NCBI GenBank assembly: GCA_013115145.1
Contig: JAAPAO010000024.1
Span: 62,001 to 126,000 of the forward strand
Direction: 5' to 3'
From: Perkinsus chesapeaki ATCC PRA-425
Taxonomy: Eukaryota; Protista; Perkinsozoa
Length of the DNA stretch: 64,000 nucleotides
Shown: one piece after another, positions 18,401 through 44,465 of the stretch
Layout of the letters: the number at the start of each line of letters is the position of its first letter
How positions within the stretch are numbered: position 1 is the stretch's first letter
Made by a program: the position numbers and the translations under genes
The notes under the pieces: generated by a model
What the model was told of the DNA's origin: nothing
Database searches by the model: none
The model's input: the letters and a program-made list of their open reading frames with translations, nothing else

Positions 18401-18464
18401 CACTGGCCCAAGGTCAACACACGTTGTTGTTGCTGAGGGCACTGATAGGAATGTTTCTACGTAA
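15426..18464 (+). CDS. SPP: M16 metallopeptidase, plastid stromal processing peptidase-like, with plastid-targeting presequence; single exon
   Basis: HxxEH motif HLVEH (15969-15983) in context LEVHVGSRDE...EQGIAHLVEH; SNAETDYHH; HSEN..GTQFPIG..IRGW...FYKKWFRPPNSTLFIVGD, recalled as typical of plant/algal SPP. Confidence 0.8.
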   Translation: MIPDLPRHRYRNRLSPIYSLLGLAIGVCVALQVVVPALFVTSQPAVAQSAAIATGYARRSASNLRAGYNAGSTRATGGYQPSWLLMGIGAAAILATVVVARKGSKRGTVSRRAAYDKANAVVEASTPLPRNPAVRVGRLSNGLEYVIQDHEDAIERRGGVHATLEVHVGSRDEGPREQGIAHLVEHAAFMGCDRRRADFASKGGQSNAETDYHHVSFETVIPGLDGLKGALGLLRQAGFEAEMKKDVVERERLVVLREKAQMDTHDYAQECAALEALHSENVLGTQFPIGSADLIRGWTREQVKGFYKKWFRPPNSTLFIVGDLQGREEEVVSEVEACFGGVDAGVAPVRSPVFHMWSPDAPTIRIDQQSKDTTVGRITLMSKQAVHPLKTWGDMRQYVAEDIAIRAVASRLARSSRTLEVPVVAEADCVDSIREDCRVSSIRIGGTTVDGAMQGVKEAARVVSDVCNKGLDKGEIEALGEDYVKGLEDMKDASSAEQLEMLMDLLLLGHTPVAPGDAVRMAKRVVKGITAGEVMEGAKRVFGGLLDNRLRAYASGKGWTEESIMEAIREGMKAKGERPKGLALHCQHLVQPAASVPRVLDIKKDSGVYHTELGTGVKVRVIQSRGEPGSYRVRIRWPGGALKARSAAHAAVASHVLASQWQRADGSVDAFMKGHSLSEPVMGQSLEWTEISVSGGKEVEAALEFIKYVLTSQVGAGREGSVDIAKAIASLEALGSSRGLSIEREGLDRLVGSMYPHTDILREPKGVGEVREVTKELSWVDDSQLQIDMVGDFRAPQEAFAAADKFFGTMKMMEGNPKDGEARQELPSVADSWTDAPQRVELPKVASDRALVLLGGGMEKQPEWQVALLAEEVLNTALFRRLREESRLTYDARGSFLVPDRRGTGSGHWTVAVHTDPADADQCVSEALQVVRGFKKVDEAALARAKTSVLGQLLQLQQANAFILAMLDKPGGLERISKATTEEVEDVFQSMRTGPRSTHVVVAEGTDRNVST

Positions 18465-18920
18465 CAGTGTAATAACAAAGTATTGAGTAGATGATATGGA
18501 GAGAGGTGGTGGCAGAATATTAGTGTTATGATTACTGACCACAGCAACACTAAAGAGAGTAGGATCGGAGGCTATAGTTAAGCTTGAAGTCGCAGCTAAG
18601 GCCAAAGCAACTAATACTACTACGGTAGAAGTTGTGAGTAGTAATGATTATTATACTGAGATGAATCATTATCAATCATCAAGTGCAGTATAGTTATAGA
18701 CATTCCTTAGTATCTATTATCAGTGTAGTGCAGTCATCTTTAGGACCTAGCTGAGGCCGATGTCCTCATTGAGGCATTGACCACCACAGTGGTCCCTTGT
18801 CGATGCTGCTGCTGCGCTTCTGAGGTTCCGTAAGAGCATTGGCCAGTAGCTGCTGTGGTGGTCAATAAAAATGACCTAGAAAGAGCACCTTTGTCGTTAA
18901 GGTGCTGCAGCCTAGGTACA
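18411..18920 (+). pseudogene. Decayed copy of the SelH-like gene overlapping the SPP 3' end
   Basis: Aligns at offset 2415 with 20826 onward and keeps the first three splice donors. ADVLIEA is kept but CKSU is replaced by LTTT; the last exon and SECIS are missing. Confidence 0.75.
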
Positions 18921-18947
18921 CATTCTACTCTCCACTCAGCAGCTTAG

Positions 18948-19103
18948 CTCCTTGAAGAGCTTGTTAGCATCGACGCCTCGTCTAGTGATAAGCTTCTCAT
19001 CGTTATTCTAAACTATGCCAATTGCAGCTTATGGGGACAAAGAGGGTCATACACCAACCGGTCTGTTGGAGGTTACTCATACCAGAAACTTGGAACAGAT
19101 CTG
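18948..19103 (+). pseudogene. Decayed 5' fragment of the serpin gene
   Basis: ctccttgaagagc...caattgcagcttatggggacaaagaggg...ttactcatacc...ttggaacag aligns to 21796-21974 with indels. Confidence 0.75.
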
Positions 19104-19417: not shown

Positions 19418-20469
19418 ATGTTGGTACTTGTTCTTCGTAGCGCCTTTATACTGAGTTGATATTATTAATAAAGAGCAGGAACAATCGTCTGGGCCTATTG
19501 TATTGGTTATTACCGTGCTTCTATTTGCTGGGGCCTTATTCGGTATCTGGTACTGAGGAGGCCCGTCATCCGACATACAGTGTTCCACCTGCCATCGGCG
19601 TCCAATCAACTCGTAACGAGTCCGGGACTTTGTTCGAGCGAAGTACATGCTATAGACACAAGCCAGTCGAACAATCTATGGGGTATCCTACATATGAAAG
19701 AATAACGATGTTGGTTAAACCTGATAGTTATGCTGATACTATGACGGTGGTCTTCCGTTCTACGTTCTATCGTATAGACGTCAACAGAAACGGTGTCAGG
19801 TTTGAGGCGGTAGACTTAGGCGACGGCGCTTGGTTGATTTATGTTGGCTACGAAAAAAATGGGAAAGAGCTCCTTCGTGCTTTAGGGTCCTATGTAGGCG
19901 CAACGCTACCTACCCCATCCGTATTATTCTATTTCAACACGAGAGCCAATAAGCTGTACTCCTCAACATTCCATCTAACTGCGGTGGATTGTTTTGACGT
20001 TGAAGAATTTTGGCCACCCACGGGGTTCCCGGCCCTTCAAAATGGTGGAGTATACCGTGGCGGGTCTTCTAGGAAACGTTGGCCATTCAAGAATAAATTG
20101 AAAATTAAGTTGGCTCTTTCTGGCACTGGCACCAGACTCCTTTTATCGTATTGGTCGAGGACGGGCAAGCTTCGGACATATGGCGAGAATGTTAATTTCA
20201 CACCCCAGCAGTATGACGGACCTGAGGGCACTACTTGGGCTATAATGGCCCCCAACCCGCACATGAATGCTCCCACTGCAGAGTTCTTGGCCCAGTGGCA
20301 GGAAGATCTGAATATTAATCTTACGAGGTTTCGTACAAATGATGGTCTTATCCCCTTTTTATATATTAACGATGACGGCAGTAAGATTCTATTTGGTGGC
20401 GAAGAAGGGTTTGTTACTCTGTGGCCGCATGGCAGGGTTCCCAAGTCGAGTAGGAATACTAAAAACTGA
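19418..20469 (+). CDS. Uncharacterised predicted secreted protein (lineage-specific?)
   Basis: 337-codon open frame 19456-20469 with an N-terminal hydrophobic stretch. A plausible ATG at 19418 joins through a ~50-nt GT-AG intron. No family recognised. Confidence 0.55.
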
Positions 20470-20865
20470 CTTCTACAGTATAATCCGGGATCAATGATGG
20501 CTCATAGTCCTTGATATGGTAACACATCCGAGTTACCTCGATTATGTATTGACTTATTTACTGGATTTTCTGTTAAGTATCGGTCACATTCAGTTATCAC
20601 ACCGCCTGTTTATTGACTGTTGCAGTTAACTTTCCTGTTGTGTTCCCTTTGGGCGCATTTTAGAGAGGATTTTACGCTCACTCACAAGGCGAAAGAGGTC
20701 ATTCTCGGTTCCTGACCATAAGGATATTAGTATAATACGCCCGCGGTCCGCACTTGCCGCCCTGCGGACGTCTCCTAGTGCACGCTGAGGCGATGCCGGT
20801 TATTCGAGGCTTCAGTACCGCCCCGAGGTCAACACACGTTGTTGTTGCTGAGGGCACTGATAGGA

Positions 20866-21483
20866 ATGTTCCTACGTAATAGTGTAATAACGAAGTGGGG
20901 AGAGGTGGCTGACTGTTAGTGTTAATTTTTGACGACCATAGCACCACCAAAGAAGACAGGATCGGAGGCTATAGTTAAGCCTAAGGGGAAGGCAAAGGGG
21001 AAGGCTAAGGGGAAGGCTAAAGCAAGTACTACTACAGTAGAAGTGGTAAGTAATAATGATGTAGGAGTGTATTTTTATTGTAAGATTAACGTTCTTGTTA
21101 CACTGTCGTGGATAACCCTTGCTAGTCATTGTTGTTGGTGTAGTGCAGTCATCTTCAGGACCCAATCGCCGCCGATGTCCTTATTGAGGCCTGCAAGAGC
21201 TGAGGAGTATTCAAACGGAGTGCTGCTGCATTAACTGAGGCACTGCAGAAGCACCGTCCAGGAACTACAGTCGTGGTCAATGAGAATGGCCAAGCCAAGC
21301 CTAGAAAGGGCACCTTTGCTGTTAAGGTGCTGCAGCTTACGGCCACACACTTCCCTCTAGTAGGCTTAGGTCCATGGTGGGAAGGAGGTCTTCGCCTTGG
21401 TTGGCATGCCACGCCCGTTTAAGAGCTTGAGGGAGTTGGATATCGACGAGGCCGCTGGTAAAGTGGCGAAGGCATTGGAGTAG
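20866..21483 (+). CDS. SELENOH: Selenoprotein H-like (Rdx fold, CxxU), 4 exons, Sec TGA at 21201-21203
   Basis: Exons 20866-20875, 20942-21045, 21159(or 21144)-21326, 21370-21483 give MFLPPPKKTG..KGKAKGKAKGKAKA..VLIEACKS-U-GVFKRSAAALTEAL..KPRKGTFAVKV..GMPRPFKSLRELD..ALE* (about 131 aa). A SECIS follows. The start exon is the least certain part. Confidence 0.88.
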
Positions 21484-21517
21484 TGGTGAGGCTGTCTGTT
21501 GTGTTGCCTGCCTTTGA

Positions 21518-21577
21518 AGAGCGAATGAAGTGGCGTTTGTAAAGCCTTTGGAGGTTCGACGTACATTGATATGCTCT
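21518..21577 (+). promoter_or_regulatory. Eukaryotic SECIS element (form 2) in the SelH 3' UTR
   Basis: Helix I AGAGC/GCTCT; core ATGAA (21525)/TGAT (21567); about 10-bp helix II with a bulge; unpaired AAA (21541-21543); apical mini-helix GCCT/AGGT. Starts 34 nt after the stop. Confidence 0.88.
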
Positions 21578-21765
21578 ACAGTGGAGGATAACCGATAGAT
21601 ATGCTCACAACTCCATTATAAATTCAAGTATGAGTTTTTCGTACCGTGCTTAGATGATTGCGTGTGGTGTTTTTGAAAAGGGACAGATTTTGTGTCGGTG
21701 ATTTCATACTAGGCTAACATCGCCGATGGCACGAATTTAAATTTGACAGCTTGATGTGTAACAAC

Positions 21766-39042: not shown

Positions 39043-42000
39043 ATGAAATACTTTTCACAGCATACGCACTCTCATAGGTCGGTTGTGTCTTAATTCATAT
39101 CAATTGGAGCGGGTGAAAGAATTAGCCTTGGAGTCTGGTGAAAATCAAGGATCCCTCGATTCGGTCGAACCCATCGGGCAGCCCATCGTGTCGACACCAC
39201 CGGAATCATTCATCCGTTGCCTGGTTACAGTAGCCTTTGCGTTGGGATCTTCTCTGGGATTAGCTGCTGCGATCGTACAGTACAGCGTGAGGGCATCTTT
39301 AATGTCAATTCCTCTTCTTGGATCAGCCGGATCGTTTTTGGGAGTGTCTACCCGAAAGCCACGGAACACGGGCACTCCCGGAGACGCTTCTATGCATCCA
39401 GTTGCCGACAAGCCGTTGCCTAGCAGAGTCGCTGAGGTTATAGCAGCACTGCAGAAGATTCTCGATACCATTCAACAAGGTCACATAAGGCAAGAACCCT
39501 TACGCTCCTCAAAGAAAAGCAACCATCCAATAATCGTATTGTATTATGCAGGCAAGAGGAAGTGGACAATATCCTGGCTCTAGTTAGAGAGGTGTTGTCC
39601 GAGTGTAGGGAGGCCGCAAAGGGAAAAGACTTCCGTGAGCACACGTAGAGGTTATTAGCGCACATCTGAGTGAAGAACCTTGAACAGGTTAATAGCTCCA
39701 GCGTATCGTCTATGGCACGTATGCATATCCCTCCTCAAAGCTGTTGATGAGTACGGTTCATGCACCGTCGATGAGGAGCCTACAACGGCCAATCTACGGG
39801 TATCTAGTCTTTTCCGATGTTGCCGAAGATTGTTGGTGGTTTATAAGGAGCTCGATTGCTTTTGCCGAGAGATTGCTGCTTGGACGCTGGAGCAGGGAAT
39901 CAGGGATATACTTAACTCGTACAGTGATGGCGAAGAAGCACGCTCGCAGAGGGACAACATGATAAAGATCTGGTATGACGTCACATAGCATCATTGGTGT
40001 CCTGGAACGGACTCAGGTTGCGGACTGGGCAGAGTTGGCTCTCGTTGGTGCCAGGAAATGCTGAGCAATGGACCGCTGGGACTGCGGCATTAACAAGGGG
40101 AATAACAATATTTAAAAAGGCCGTTACGGAGCTGTCTGAGGAATCGGTTAGTGACATTACTAAGAATGCTGCCTACTCTGGCGCCTTGTGCCTGGCTCAA
40201 GGGCTGTGCCTCACTGGGAACTGGGATGGCGCTGTCCAGGTAAGTCGTTCTATGATGGGATGTCCTTGGCTGTCACTGCCGCATTTTAGACGATAAGCAG
40301 CTGTCGCGGGCTCTTATCTACCTGGGTCGGGTATCGCCGTGTTGAAGCGTCATTAGAGCTGGCGTGCCAGTGCAGGGATATCGCCACCAGAATGATTCGC
40401 GCAGCAAAATCGCCAAGTGGAAAGGAATGGGCTATCGGTGGGGCTTTACTAATTAGCCAGCTCCCGTAGGGTGGCTTCGAATTCATACATAGGACTCCCT
40501 GGATGGTCTTCCTCGTCCACGCCAGTCCTGCCCGGAGAGTTGGGGAAGGTGGCGAACCTGCTGAAGTGTGCACTCGAAGTTGTCTCGGATGATTCTTCGC
40601 CTGCAACAGACAACGAGGCTAGCTGTAAGCCGATGGGTTATGTCGTGAATTTCAAAGTCCGTAACACCACAGCCTGTTCCGTGGATGGAAGCGTTAGTCT
40701 CGATTGCGCATGTCCGTAGTGGTTGTCCAACTAAGCAAGACCCGCAGCGAGGTGTACCGTGTGCTGGCTGAGGTCCTGTCAATGCAGGGGCAGGGTGAGA
40801 AAGCTCTTGAGAGTATACAGAATGCTATACGGGAAGACATCCAGCACAAGCAATATGAGTACGGCCCACTGAAGGACATACACTTGACGAGCTTGTTTCC
40901 AGGGGTTATTATGAAAGCATCCGTGTTGCTGCATGGGTCATCCTCAACACCAATCCAGAGACTCTGAAATCGGGGACGACAGAAAAGCTAATCAAAACTG
41001 GAGAGGTGAGTACACCAGTCTTGAACATATATTACGGTGACGCACCTTAGCTGAAGAGATTGGTGGAAGAGTACTGCGCAGCATCCACAGAAGTCCCGTC
41101 GGAGTTGCAACCAGGACCATCGAGCAGGCTGTTGAACTTGGTCGAGCCTTTAGTACACGCTGTTGTCGCACTATGTAAACCACACAATCGTCCAGAGTTT
41201 TGTTCGGCCAGGTTAGAGGAGATGGTTGAGGTACGCTTCACGATAGTGCGACCGGTTCTGCATAATTCAGGACGTATTATTGTCAGGCACTCAGCCTGGT
41301 AATGCGATCTCTCGAACGAGAATGTGCAGGCTCGTCGTTGGCGTTGATGGCTGCGAGGATAGCGGACGCGATAGGGACTTTATCTCGATCCATTTCTCGG
41401 GGCTCGGAGAAGGGAGCTGGTGGGTTCCTTCGCTGGATCCTGGTTTCGCTGAATCGCGCGAGCGAAAATAAATGAGAGAATAATGCACCGTCCGGGAATT
41501 GAACCCGGACCATCTGCTTGGAAGGCAGATATCCTAACCATTAGACCAACGGTGCTGCTTAAAAGTTGAACGTGGTAAATTGCTCCACCACCCCATGCCG
41601 CTTGTACCGCTATATTGTGCATATTATACCGACTGATTATTCGATCAAGCATCTGCAGATACCCGATTGGGCGGTACTGCGTCTAACGGACTTAGTAGCC
41701 TATTGCGCGACATCGTTCTTGTCATATCGGCTAAGAGTCCCTGGGTGGACGAGGTTGTGAAATCACAATGCTCGGGCATAGTCTGGAACATGGCTGCCGG
41801 TGTAATACCCCTACGGAACCGTTCACTGCGACGGACGTGAATTAACGGCCGGTTCTCAGTTGTACACGTGTGGAGATTATGTTGCTGCGTCAACGTGGTT
41901 TGAACTATGCCAGCAAGTCGTGGATGAAGAGTCCGAATATCGGTGCTGGCAGGCTAGAGCGCTTTGCTCGTACAGAGCTTGTCAATACGAGGAAGGTTAT

Positions 42001-44465
42001 CGGAATTCCGACATCCGTTGCGGGTATGAACTCAGCCTTGGTCGATATTTAGGTGTCCGTCTGGCAAGAGCGGCACTGCGCTTATGTTCGGATGCAACTG
42101 CAAGATCGCAACCACTGCTCGCGATGGTCAATTGTGCGATTGACGGACAGGTGTCGGGAGCTGGTAAGAAATGTTTTCCATGTGGCTGCAGTGCGAAACT
42201 GCTAGAGGTCATGCTTGAATATACCAGCCCAAGAGCATGTTGCCGCATTGTATTGTTCACTCCTCGTGGCCGATCCTTAGTTACTGAAATCATTGGCGAG
42301 TTAGAAAAGATAGCAGCTAGTTCTGCCGAGGGAGTATCACCACAGCTACTCGTGGCAGTGCTGAACAAATTTGAAGGGTTAGAAGGTATGGAGGAGTATG
42401 TCTCTAGATGTCTCAAGGTAAGGTGTTCTCGGTACAGATAACCTAGAGTTAATTTCATTGTGCCAGCTGATTGGCCAGTACCTCTGTCGGGGGAGCGATG
42501 GCCCTCAAATAAACCTATTGGACCGTTTGACGATATTTCGTTGTATAGCAAAGAACGCTGTCGACGGGGACGACAGTGAAGCAGCTCTTCATTATGTCGA
42601 AGCAGTATGTGACAGTTTGAGCGGCGTAAGACAAACAAAGAGTGGGTTTATTCTTATTCTTTGAACTCTGAGTACACACTCAAAGCAACGGCTTGCGATG
42701 CAGAGTCACGAATCCAGCCCCTCGTCCACGGGCGATACAACAAGGGGTTGGTCAGAGTCGCTATCGTCTAGCGGTTAGGACGTCACGTTGTGGCCGTGAC
42801 AACCCCGGTTCAAATCCGGGTAGCGACTTTTGCTTGACATCATCATGGCGTCCAGGTTCAGCTAGAAGATTGCCAGTCTGACCAAGAACAAGTGGTAGAT
42901 CAAATTGCGGCCTTATTTAAAATCGGCTGGAACCTAGGCGTTCGGCTGGTAAACTGCGACGACCAGGAAGAGTCTAGTCCTTGGGATGCTGTGAGTAGCG
43001 TACACTCGGGGCTTATGTCTGCCGTAAGCTCTTGGCTTCTCAGTCCTTACGAACGGAAACGGTACTTGGGAATGTTAATCCAAGCTTTCAGGCCTTTCGC
43101 GCCTTTCGCAGTGCCCGCACCCTGATAGATCAATTCCTTCTACCCCATGAGAAGGCCAAGGCGGAACGAGACGAAAAGGAATCATTGAAGGTGAGCCAGC
43201 ACATTTGTCAGACAACCTCTGCACCCTATTGAATATCGTGGCAGCGATAGACGTTTTTCAGCTAACAGAGGATTCCCGTATGTGCCTTATTTTTATGCTC
43301 ACGGCCCTGACCAGATTGGCTTTGAGCTTGGAAAACTCGCCACAAGAGTCATCTGACAATTCACACGAGTAGAATAGTCACTGAAGGCCGACTAGCAATG
43401 GCAGAACTATTTCAGAGCTGAACAGGAGGAGCCACCATCCACGAACTCAAGCCAAGCTAGGGGTCTGGCCGGCCTGACAGCCAAGGAACTTTATAAAGTA
43501 TTCGATACTGCTGCTGTGGCCGCTAATTTCCCTCTGAATCTTCACAAACATGCTATTCTGTTTTTCGGCAGGTGGGATTAGGTTTGTTAAAAGTAAACCA
43601 GGAAATGGACAACGGGGCAGCCCGAAGTCTACCGCTGATGCTACTGTTTGAGTTCAAGTGCACCGTTGGGGCACTCTCGGGTGCGAATGACGGCGAGACG
43701 AGATTAGCTGAAGTCAAGCGCATTCTTGAGGACGCTCAATCTAAACGAGTCGCCTCCAAGGACTGGCTTGAGGTACATTCAACGGTCTTGTGTTCAGGTT
43801 TTGTCTGTCGTTGGCATGTAGATACTCACCTCCTGGTGCCTAAACCGGCGTCCGCCTGCATTCGGCGAGGCAGGTATGGTTCTTGCAGTATTGACCAGTT
43901 CCCCGAGAGATGCTGGGCGGATGCTTCCCGTCTATTATCGCGAGTGGCTCCGAGCACAAGAAGGAGCTGATGATTCGACACTTCAGGTGAGCTCCCCGCA
44001 AGTTAGGTTTTTGTGGTCTTAGAATGCTTCCGAACTGTCAGATTCTTGGCACCTTGCTGACCCTCCTAGACGAGGCTGTGCAGTCCAATGGAGCATCCTC
44101 TTTGGCCGAGGTAGGCCCTTTCCTATTATAGCATCTACAGATGTACTTTTGTTAGATTGGATACAATGAAAAGGAGATAAAATGGGTGCTATGTTACTCC
44201 TGGGATAGAGCTGTTCGGCTCTACAGGTCCTTCCCAACTTGTAGCACTTCCAAAAGCTGTGATAGTTCCATTTTTCAGGCGATGTAGTTATGTTTTAGCA
44301 GAGCGTATGATGAGCAAAAGCATGTCCTTCCTAAGGTTTGCGCTACCCGAGACGAAGGAGTCTCTCGAAGGTGGCTGGCCACTTTTTCGATATCATACCG
44401 TTGTTAAGCGGTCAGGTCTCATGGCACAAGCATATGACCAGTGCTTGCAGAGAGTTCCAGCCTGA
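39043..44465 (+). CDS. Large helical/TPR protein, ZIP4/SPO22/TEX11-like (multi-exon; start uncertain)
   Basis: RLWHVCISL; VWNMAA..LYTCGDYVAASTWFELC...RCWQARALC; LFKIGWNLG; AERMMSKSMSFL. Order and spacing recall ZIP4/TEX11. Confidence 0.5.
41484..41555 (-). tRNA. trnG: tRNA-Gly (TCC)
   Basis: Minus strand GCACCGT TG GTCTAATGGTTAGGA T ATCTG CCTTCCA... with anticodon stem TCTGC/GCAGA around TCC, T-arm CCGGGTTCAATTCCCGG and acceptor GCACCGT/ACGGTGC. Confidence 0.95.
42757..42828 (+). tRNA. trnH: tRNA-His (GTG)
   Basis: Acceptor GTCGCTA/TAGCGAC, anticodon arm TCACG-TTGTGGC-CGTGA, T-arm CCCGGTTCAAATCCGGG, followed by TTTT. Confidence 0.95.

Follow-up and report, generated by a model that had tools for sequence, protein, structure and literature searches.

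A probable selenoprotein H gene with an in-frame TGA codon in Perkinsus chesapeaki

Gene structure and reading frame

We analysed a stretch of 64,000 nucleotides (hereafter the window, in whose coordinates all positions are given unless stated otherwise) of contig JAAPAO010000024.1 from the public assembly GCA_013115145.1 of Perkinsus chesapeaki ATCC PRA-425. On the + strand, at 20866–21483, four exons bounded by GT-AG introns join into a 396-nt frame whose sole internal stop is a TGA, and the predicted spliced product has 131 residues, including Cys50-Lys-Ser-Sec53. An earlier note, made from the sequence alone, had described a frame that passes through a TGA after CKS and continues via KPRKGTFAVK to a last exon, with a basic N-terminal part containing KGKA three times. 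Both the translation and the four-exon join agree with this description: the TGA at 21201–21203 lies within the translation of 21150–21327, with DPIAADVLIEACKS before it and GVFKRSAAALTEALQKHRPGTTVVVNENGQAKPRKGTFAVK after it, the translation of 21376–21483 is GGKEVFALVGMPRPFKSLRELDIDEAAGKVAKALE followed by TAG, and the threefold KGKA is found in KPKGKAKGKAKGKAK, a lysine-rich run within the translation of 20929–21046. The program-made list of open reading frames, said in the same note to break at the TGA, does indeed fragment the gene, both there and at the introns.

Exon 1 (20866–20875) would consist of an inferred start codon and 7 nt (M-F-L and the first base of a proline codon), and its ATG is followed by a GT donor at 20876. 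Exon 2 has no in-frame ATG, and there are stops upstream of it in its frame. The exon 1 ATG is preceded, at a distance of 2 nt, by an AG, in the same placement as the spliced-leader junction of the neighbouring serpin gene, and a segment at about 20822–20896, including exon 1, is nearly identical in a decayed paralogue (copy B, about 18407–18480). Intron 1 (20876–20941; 66 nt, GTAATA...CATAG) was deduced solely from the reading frame. Exon 2 (20942–21045) encodes the lysine-rich N-terminal region PPKKTGSEAIVKPKGKAKGKAKGKAKASTTTVEV. The acceptor of intron 2 (21046–21158; 113 nt, GTAAGT...TTCAG) is conserved in copy B; an alternative acceptor at 21149 was rejected, since the frame then runs into stops. 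Exon 3 (21159–21326), supported by TIGR02174 and BLASTP matches, encodes the first strand, the CKSU redox motif, the first helix and KPRKGTFAVK, and the TGA was assigned as the Sec53 codon from the TGA or U at the aligned position in homologues and in published selenoprotein H (SelH) sequences. Intron 3 (21327–21369; 43 nt, GTGCTG...CTTAG) is frame-shifting, and its junction is supported by three intronless homologues (P0126, P0127 and L004, described below), which run contiguously across this point with nearly equal spacing. Exon 4 (21370–21483), encoding VHGGKEVFALVGMPRPFKSLRELDIDEAAGKVAKALE and ending with the TAG stop, is supported by a BLASTP match to C. reinhardtii SelH, in its C-terminal block. 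Transcription of the gene, its three junctions and the 10-nt exon 1 are proposed here on the grounds of frame logic, canonical splice sites, copy B and colinearity with the intronless homologues.

Contigs from two separate DNA studies (2020 and 2022) match 20841–21690 and beyond with zero differences, so the TGA is not an assembly error; apparent joints in these matches are due to copy B. Nor is TGA a general sense codon here, since it terminates 9 of the 20 long open reading frames in the window.

In the public assembly, the locus is covered by a call of 370 aa without a Pfam domain (window 19708–21598; L002, 943–2833). This call begins inside the upstream open reading frame, which has its own TGA stop at 20467–20469, spans the whole SelH locus and ends in the SECIS region, and it is therefore probably a chimeric misprediction. 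Automated annotation had been expected to get this gene wrong, and it did so by running across the locus from the upstream gene. The upstream frame itself (19456–20469) encodes 337 aa and has no Pfam domain.

SECIS-like hairpin in the 3' flank

Alignment with Rfam SECIS_1, folding and a pattern scan identified a SECIS-like hairpin of type II within the predicted 3' UTR, at 21515–21580 on the + strand. Its core consists of ATGA (21525–21528), AAA (21541–21543) and TGAT (21567–21570), and helix I begins some 34 nt past the TAG. In the predicted fold (z = −2.1), a lower helix is followed by helix II, with about 9 pairs, and by an apical mini-stem of 3–5 bp; helix II is irregular at two places, where an A is bulged out and a single U is unpaired. 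The hairpin shares with the type II SECIS family (Rfam RF00031) the AUGA/UGAU quartet, the unpaired AAA 12 nt after the core, the apical mini-stem, helix I and the 3' UTR position; it differs in the irregularities of helix II and in its score, since SECIS_1 aligns over its full length at 21515–21580 with 16.6 bits, which falls well short of the gathering score of 35. The form-2 SECIS that the earlier note had placed 34 nt past the TAG was thus recovered in its sequence motifs, helices and position, but not at the score that Rfam asks of a family member. The E value printed by Rfam (6.4) refers to 4227 families and scales to about 0.0015 for SECIS_1 alone in 1.2 kb.

We also scanned both strands of the 64-kb window for the pattern together with its pairing, with the quality of the candidate hairpin as the threshold. 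The site at 21515–21580 was the only one found in the real window, and dinucleotide shuffles yielded a mean of 0.68 sites per window. Such a hairpin is therefore unremarkable anywhere in 64 kb, but in any given 250-nt 3' flank, and so within the 250 nt after this stop, the expectation is about 0.001.

Relationship to SelH and other Rdx proteins

Exon 3 (56 aa, with X at the TGA) had a single NCBIfam match, to TIGR02174 (CXXU_selWTH; 19.7 bits, E = 7.9e-4; residues 8–55 of the exon on profile positions 2–46), although this query was one exon rather than a full protein and all matches to the profile, which covers SelT, SelW and SelH, fell below its cut-off of 34.2 bits. TIGR02174 was also the sole NCBIfam match for the homologue P0126, for the post-TGA piece from the window and for a piece of the environmental contig L006, and it was the better of two weak matches for a piece of L004. 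Pfam PF10262 (Rdx) gave no match with the window pieces or with P0126. In the ESM Atlas, PF10262 was present in 85 of the 100 clusters nearest to P0126, and the nearest structural neighbour of the top cluster was a plant 'putative Selenoprotein H'. Among the clusters listed near P0126, 13–81% of the members carried PF10262, and the cluster that bears the name putative Selenoprotein H stood at 13%.

The exon pieces proved too short as queries: PDB sequence searches, including a profile-based one, and an ESM Atlas search with a 41-aa piece returned nothing useful, and a word-indexed protein search gave zero candidates. An exhaustive HMMER search with the 41-aa piece against 1.8 billion sequences retrieved only five long, repetitive proteins, which were discarded as unrelated. 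AlphaFold models of P0126, predicted from the sequence alone and with an 8-row alignment, had low confidence (pLDDT 49 and 59). The order of the elements in these low-confidence models (a strand, a helix, three strands, and a further strand and helix) fits the thioredoxin-like (Rdx) fold; Foldseek matches of the models to Swiss-Prot models were dismissed as meaningless.

The comparison with published SelH sequences was more informative. In the alignment of Lobanov et al. 2007 (Additional file 2, PMC2375036), C. reinhardtii SelH reads IVIE-ACKSUGAFKTRATKL..APGTSVSVNPD-KPRKGCFEVRGPG-GKTFVSL-LDMPRPFTKLKALDVEALAEVLAALKE, and the O. tauri sequence contains TSKKUGVFLRRAEHL and LNMPRPFTKLRELDLE. With BLASTP (pairwise E values), the exon 3 post-TGA piece was 44% identical to the C. 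reinhardtii block over 41 aa (E = 2e-8) and exon 4 was 47% identical to the C-terminal block over 34 aa (E = 5e-9), both pieces being colinear with the algal protein, whose IE-ACKSU-G redox motif is identical to that of the Perkinsus gene. The Sec53 TGA aligns with U in published SelH, and the published rows have U or C at this position. The L-x-MPRPF-x-x-L-x-x-LD block is common to the algal and rice SelH rows, with MKRPF in Arabidopsis, and it was absent from the examined part of the published SelW alignment. SelH-type homology, which the earlier note had proposed from family motifs, is upheld by these matches.

Green-algal SelH proteins are similar in size to the Perkinsus product, share the VNP-x-KPRKG-x-FEV and L-x-MPRPF-x-x-L-x-x-LD blocks with it, and are encoded by genes with a UGA Sec codon and a SECIS in the 3' UTR; the lysine/alanine-rich N-terminal tail has a counterpart in Ostreococcus SelH. 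The Perkinsus gene differs in its three short introns, in the (KGKA)x3 of its N-terminal tail and in its host, a non-photosynthetic alveolate parasite. The SECIS of O. tauri SelH is described as type I, whereas the Perkinsus candidate is of type II. Human SELENOH (Q8IZQ5) shares the CxxU motif (as CTSU), the AAAL start of the helix, KPRRGSFEV, a basic N-terminus and a small size, but its C-terminal block reads GPPRKLKFPEP, in place of GMPRPFKSLRELD in the Perkinsus protein.

SelW, SelT and Rdx12 proteins (TIGR02174/PF10262) have in common with the Perkinsus product a thioredoxin-like core (predicted for the latter), CxxU after the first strand and the profile match. In the part of the SelW alignment that was examined, however, the rows read VVYCGAUGY at the redox motif and several C-terminal rows contain VHSK or LYSKK motifs, neither of which is found in the Perkinsus gene. 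SelT proteins carry a signal peptide or membrane segment; the Perkinsus protein has none of this kind.

Environmental homologues with TGA at the Sec codon

A back-translated scan of JGI metagenomes identified L003 and L004, which encode an intronless relative reading IEASKE-TGA-GVFKRSAAKL ... RPRKGCFVVRV ... MPRPFKALRQVDIE. The spliced Perkinsus product is 50% identical to that of L004 over 84 aa (pairwise E = 2e-20), with TGA on TGA. A profile built from the pieces retrieved the proteins P0126 and P0128 and the fragment P0127. In public protein sets P0126 carries W at the critical residue, and the DNA of seven contigs (L005–L011, from TARA Oceans, other ENA assemblies and NCBI GCA_017891565.1) has TGA there, so the gene caller presumably used a code in which TGA is Trp. 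The P0126 gene, from an uncultured marine eukaryote, is intronless and reads IVIEACKS-TGA-GVFKRSAAK ... KPRKGTFEIRV ... VGMKRPFKALRELDIE; its start is basic (MPKAKTQTKSKSKN), and the N-terminus of this TARA homologue is rich in lysine and alanine, like exon 2. BLASTP matched P0126 to the C. reinhardtii SelH block with E = 4e-11. In both L003/L004 and L005–L011, TGA occupies the aligned codon and the sequence is conserved on both sides of it. The environmental contigs, with TGA, and the published rows, with U or C, thus settle in the affirmative whether homologues align with C or U at this position, on which the earlier note had made its case depend.

Rfam detected no SECIS in L004 or in L005/L006. 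The 3' UTR of the TARA homologue contains a long AUGA...AAAAAA...UGA hairpin (z = −4.4), with a helix II longer than the consensus, and no convincing SECIS was found in L004 within the 1.1 kb present. The L004 gene (1390–2016; JGI Ga0136560_1001650) has Ser for Cys three residues before Sec (SKE-U), resembling the SKK-U of published O. tauri SelH. Its long lysine-rich tail is C-terminal rather than N-terminal, and an in-frame TAG directly follows MGKRKAEE.

Decayed relatives

Copy B, a decayed tandem paralogue on the + strand at 18407–18954 (blastn, 68% identity over 581 nt), lies 2.4 kb upstream of the intact gene. It can still be recognised from the 5' segment and the ATG through exon 2 into the first part of exon 3, with 15 nt of the KGKA repeat missing. 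After DLAEADVLIEA, copy B reads LTTTVVPCRCCCCASEVP and then stops at an early TAA, LTTTVVPCRCCCC replaces CxxU, and there is neither an exon 4 nor a SECIS. A second relative was found in Perkinsus marinus at the syntenic position upstream of the serpin orthologue (GG682187.1; L001, 5400–5815). It retains LISKS-TGA-G without the Cys, and the frame closes 17 codons later; an exon-4-like remnant (VGMHRPFKSSQELDMDE, the MHRPF block) is preceded by an in-frame TGA. In the SECIS-like stretch, ATGA is changed to GTAATACGA and TAAAG to TAGAG, and an Rfam search of equal size on the P. marinus syntenic stretch found no SECIS.

The P. marinus copy looks like a pseudogene, and the comparison suggests, with the caveat of a 100-N gap nearby (L001, 4755–4853), that SelH may have been lost at this locus in that species. 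Both relatives lack CxxU and the SECIS and have lost most of their coding similarity further downstream; set against these two decayed copies, the preservation of the intact one speaks for selection on it. One of the three copies seen is intact, and we tentatively raise the possibility, which we consider less than even, that the genus is midway through the loss of SelH.

Interpretation and alternative explanations

We interpret the locus as a functional gene of the selenoprotein H (SELENOH) family in a Perkinsus species, with a probability of about 0.88. Removal of the three short introns would give an mRNA for a 131-residue protein in which a small thioredoxin-like (Rdx) domain comes after a lysine-rich N-terminal tail. 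The redox centre of this domain, Cys50-x-x-Sec53, would sit where the first strand passes into the first helix. The UGA at 21201 would be read as selenocysteine through the type II SECIS, about 278 nt downstream in the mRNA and 41 nt past the TAG, and the hairpin would recruit SBP2, eEFSec and Sec-tRNA, as in the standard eukaryotic pathway. In mammals, SELENOH is known to be nucleolar and to have a redox role; by analogy with characterised SelH proteins, and on this assumption, the Perkinsus protein probably acts as a thiol-selenol oxidoreductase in the nucleus or nucleolus.

The most serious competing explanation, which we nevertheless regard as unlikely, is that this copy is silent or recently dead, the TGA being a plain stop or the gene being untranscribed. 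In its favour, no RNA was found over the SelH gene in two small runs carrying the species label (X1 and X2; about 4 Mb of contigs each), and the clear decay of the tandem paralogue and of the P. marinus syntenic copy shows the family to be prone to loss in this genus. However, those relatives bear multiple lesions over an equal length, whereas the four exons, six splice sites, stop codon and SECIS core motifs are all intact here, and the residues after the TGA are still 44–50% identical to distant SelH sequences.

An even less probable assignment is to another branch of the Rdx superfamily, as a SelW-, SelT- or SelV-like selenoprotein. TIGR02174 covers SelT, SelW and SelH jointly, and neither Pfam nor the fold search gave anything more specific, but CKSUG, VN-x-x-KPRKG-x-F-x-V and L-x-MPRPF-x-x-L-x-x-LD correspond one by one to blocks in the published SelH rows, Ostreococcus SelH has a basic N-terminus of the same kind, and the hallmarks noted above for SelT and for the examined SelW rows are missing. 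That the TGA is a misassembled Cys codon, or that the frame and the hairpin coincide by chance, we consider extremely improbable: the subthreshold SECIS score and the roughly 0.7 hairpins of this quality expected per random 64-kb window are outweighed by the same TGA in the contigs of two independent DNA studies, by the TGA that three environmental lineages have at the aligned codon and by the expectation of about 0.001 for the hairpin within 250 nt after this stop.

Misannotation at UGA is the rule for selenoprotein genes, and what is described here is a SelH gene that annotation missed, from a well-known family, rather than new biology; knowledge of SelH and of Sec decoding is unchanged by it. 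For a parasite genome in which the public model fuses the SelH locus with the upstream gene, the result amends the annotation, and it extends the selenoproteins observed in Perkinsozoa by SelH. Few selenoproteins of algae (PMC7539508) and protists are as widespread as SelH. The literature searched yielded no description of a Perkinsus selenoproteome, the only trace being a Sec-containing SPS that the supplement of Mariotti et al. 2015 lists for P. marinus, with which the use of Sec in the organism studied here is consistent. The contrast between intact and decayed copies within the genus could be used for studying selenoprotein loss in parasites. Should P. marinus lack any other SelH, one of these closely related parasites would have a nuclear selenoprotein and the other would not, and the species pair would then be suited to asking what SelH is needed for.

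Neighbouring genes and transcripts

The tRNA genes in the middle of the window are a tRNA-Gly (41484–41555, − strand) and a tRNA-His (42756–42829, + strand), and no tRNA-Sec was found within the 64 kb. The window is a one-directional gene array: 21 of the 25 open reading frames of at least 150 aa are on the + strand, and the GC skew is positive throughout. The gene downstream of SelH encodes a serpin that shares 73% identity with a Perkinsus marinus ATCC 50983 protein. The trans-splice acceptor of its mRNA (21748–21754, + strand), identified from an RNA contig of run X2, sets an upper bound for the 3' end of SelH; in this contig, a Perkinsus-type spliced leader (ACCGTAGCCATCTTGGCTCAAG) is joined at 21754, a few bases before the first ATG of the serpin, and the dinoflagellate spliced-leader pattern was absent from the window. 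The RNA contigs are 90–95% similar to the window and may come from another strain.
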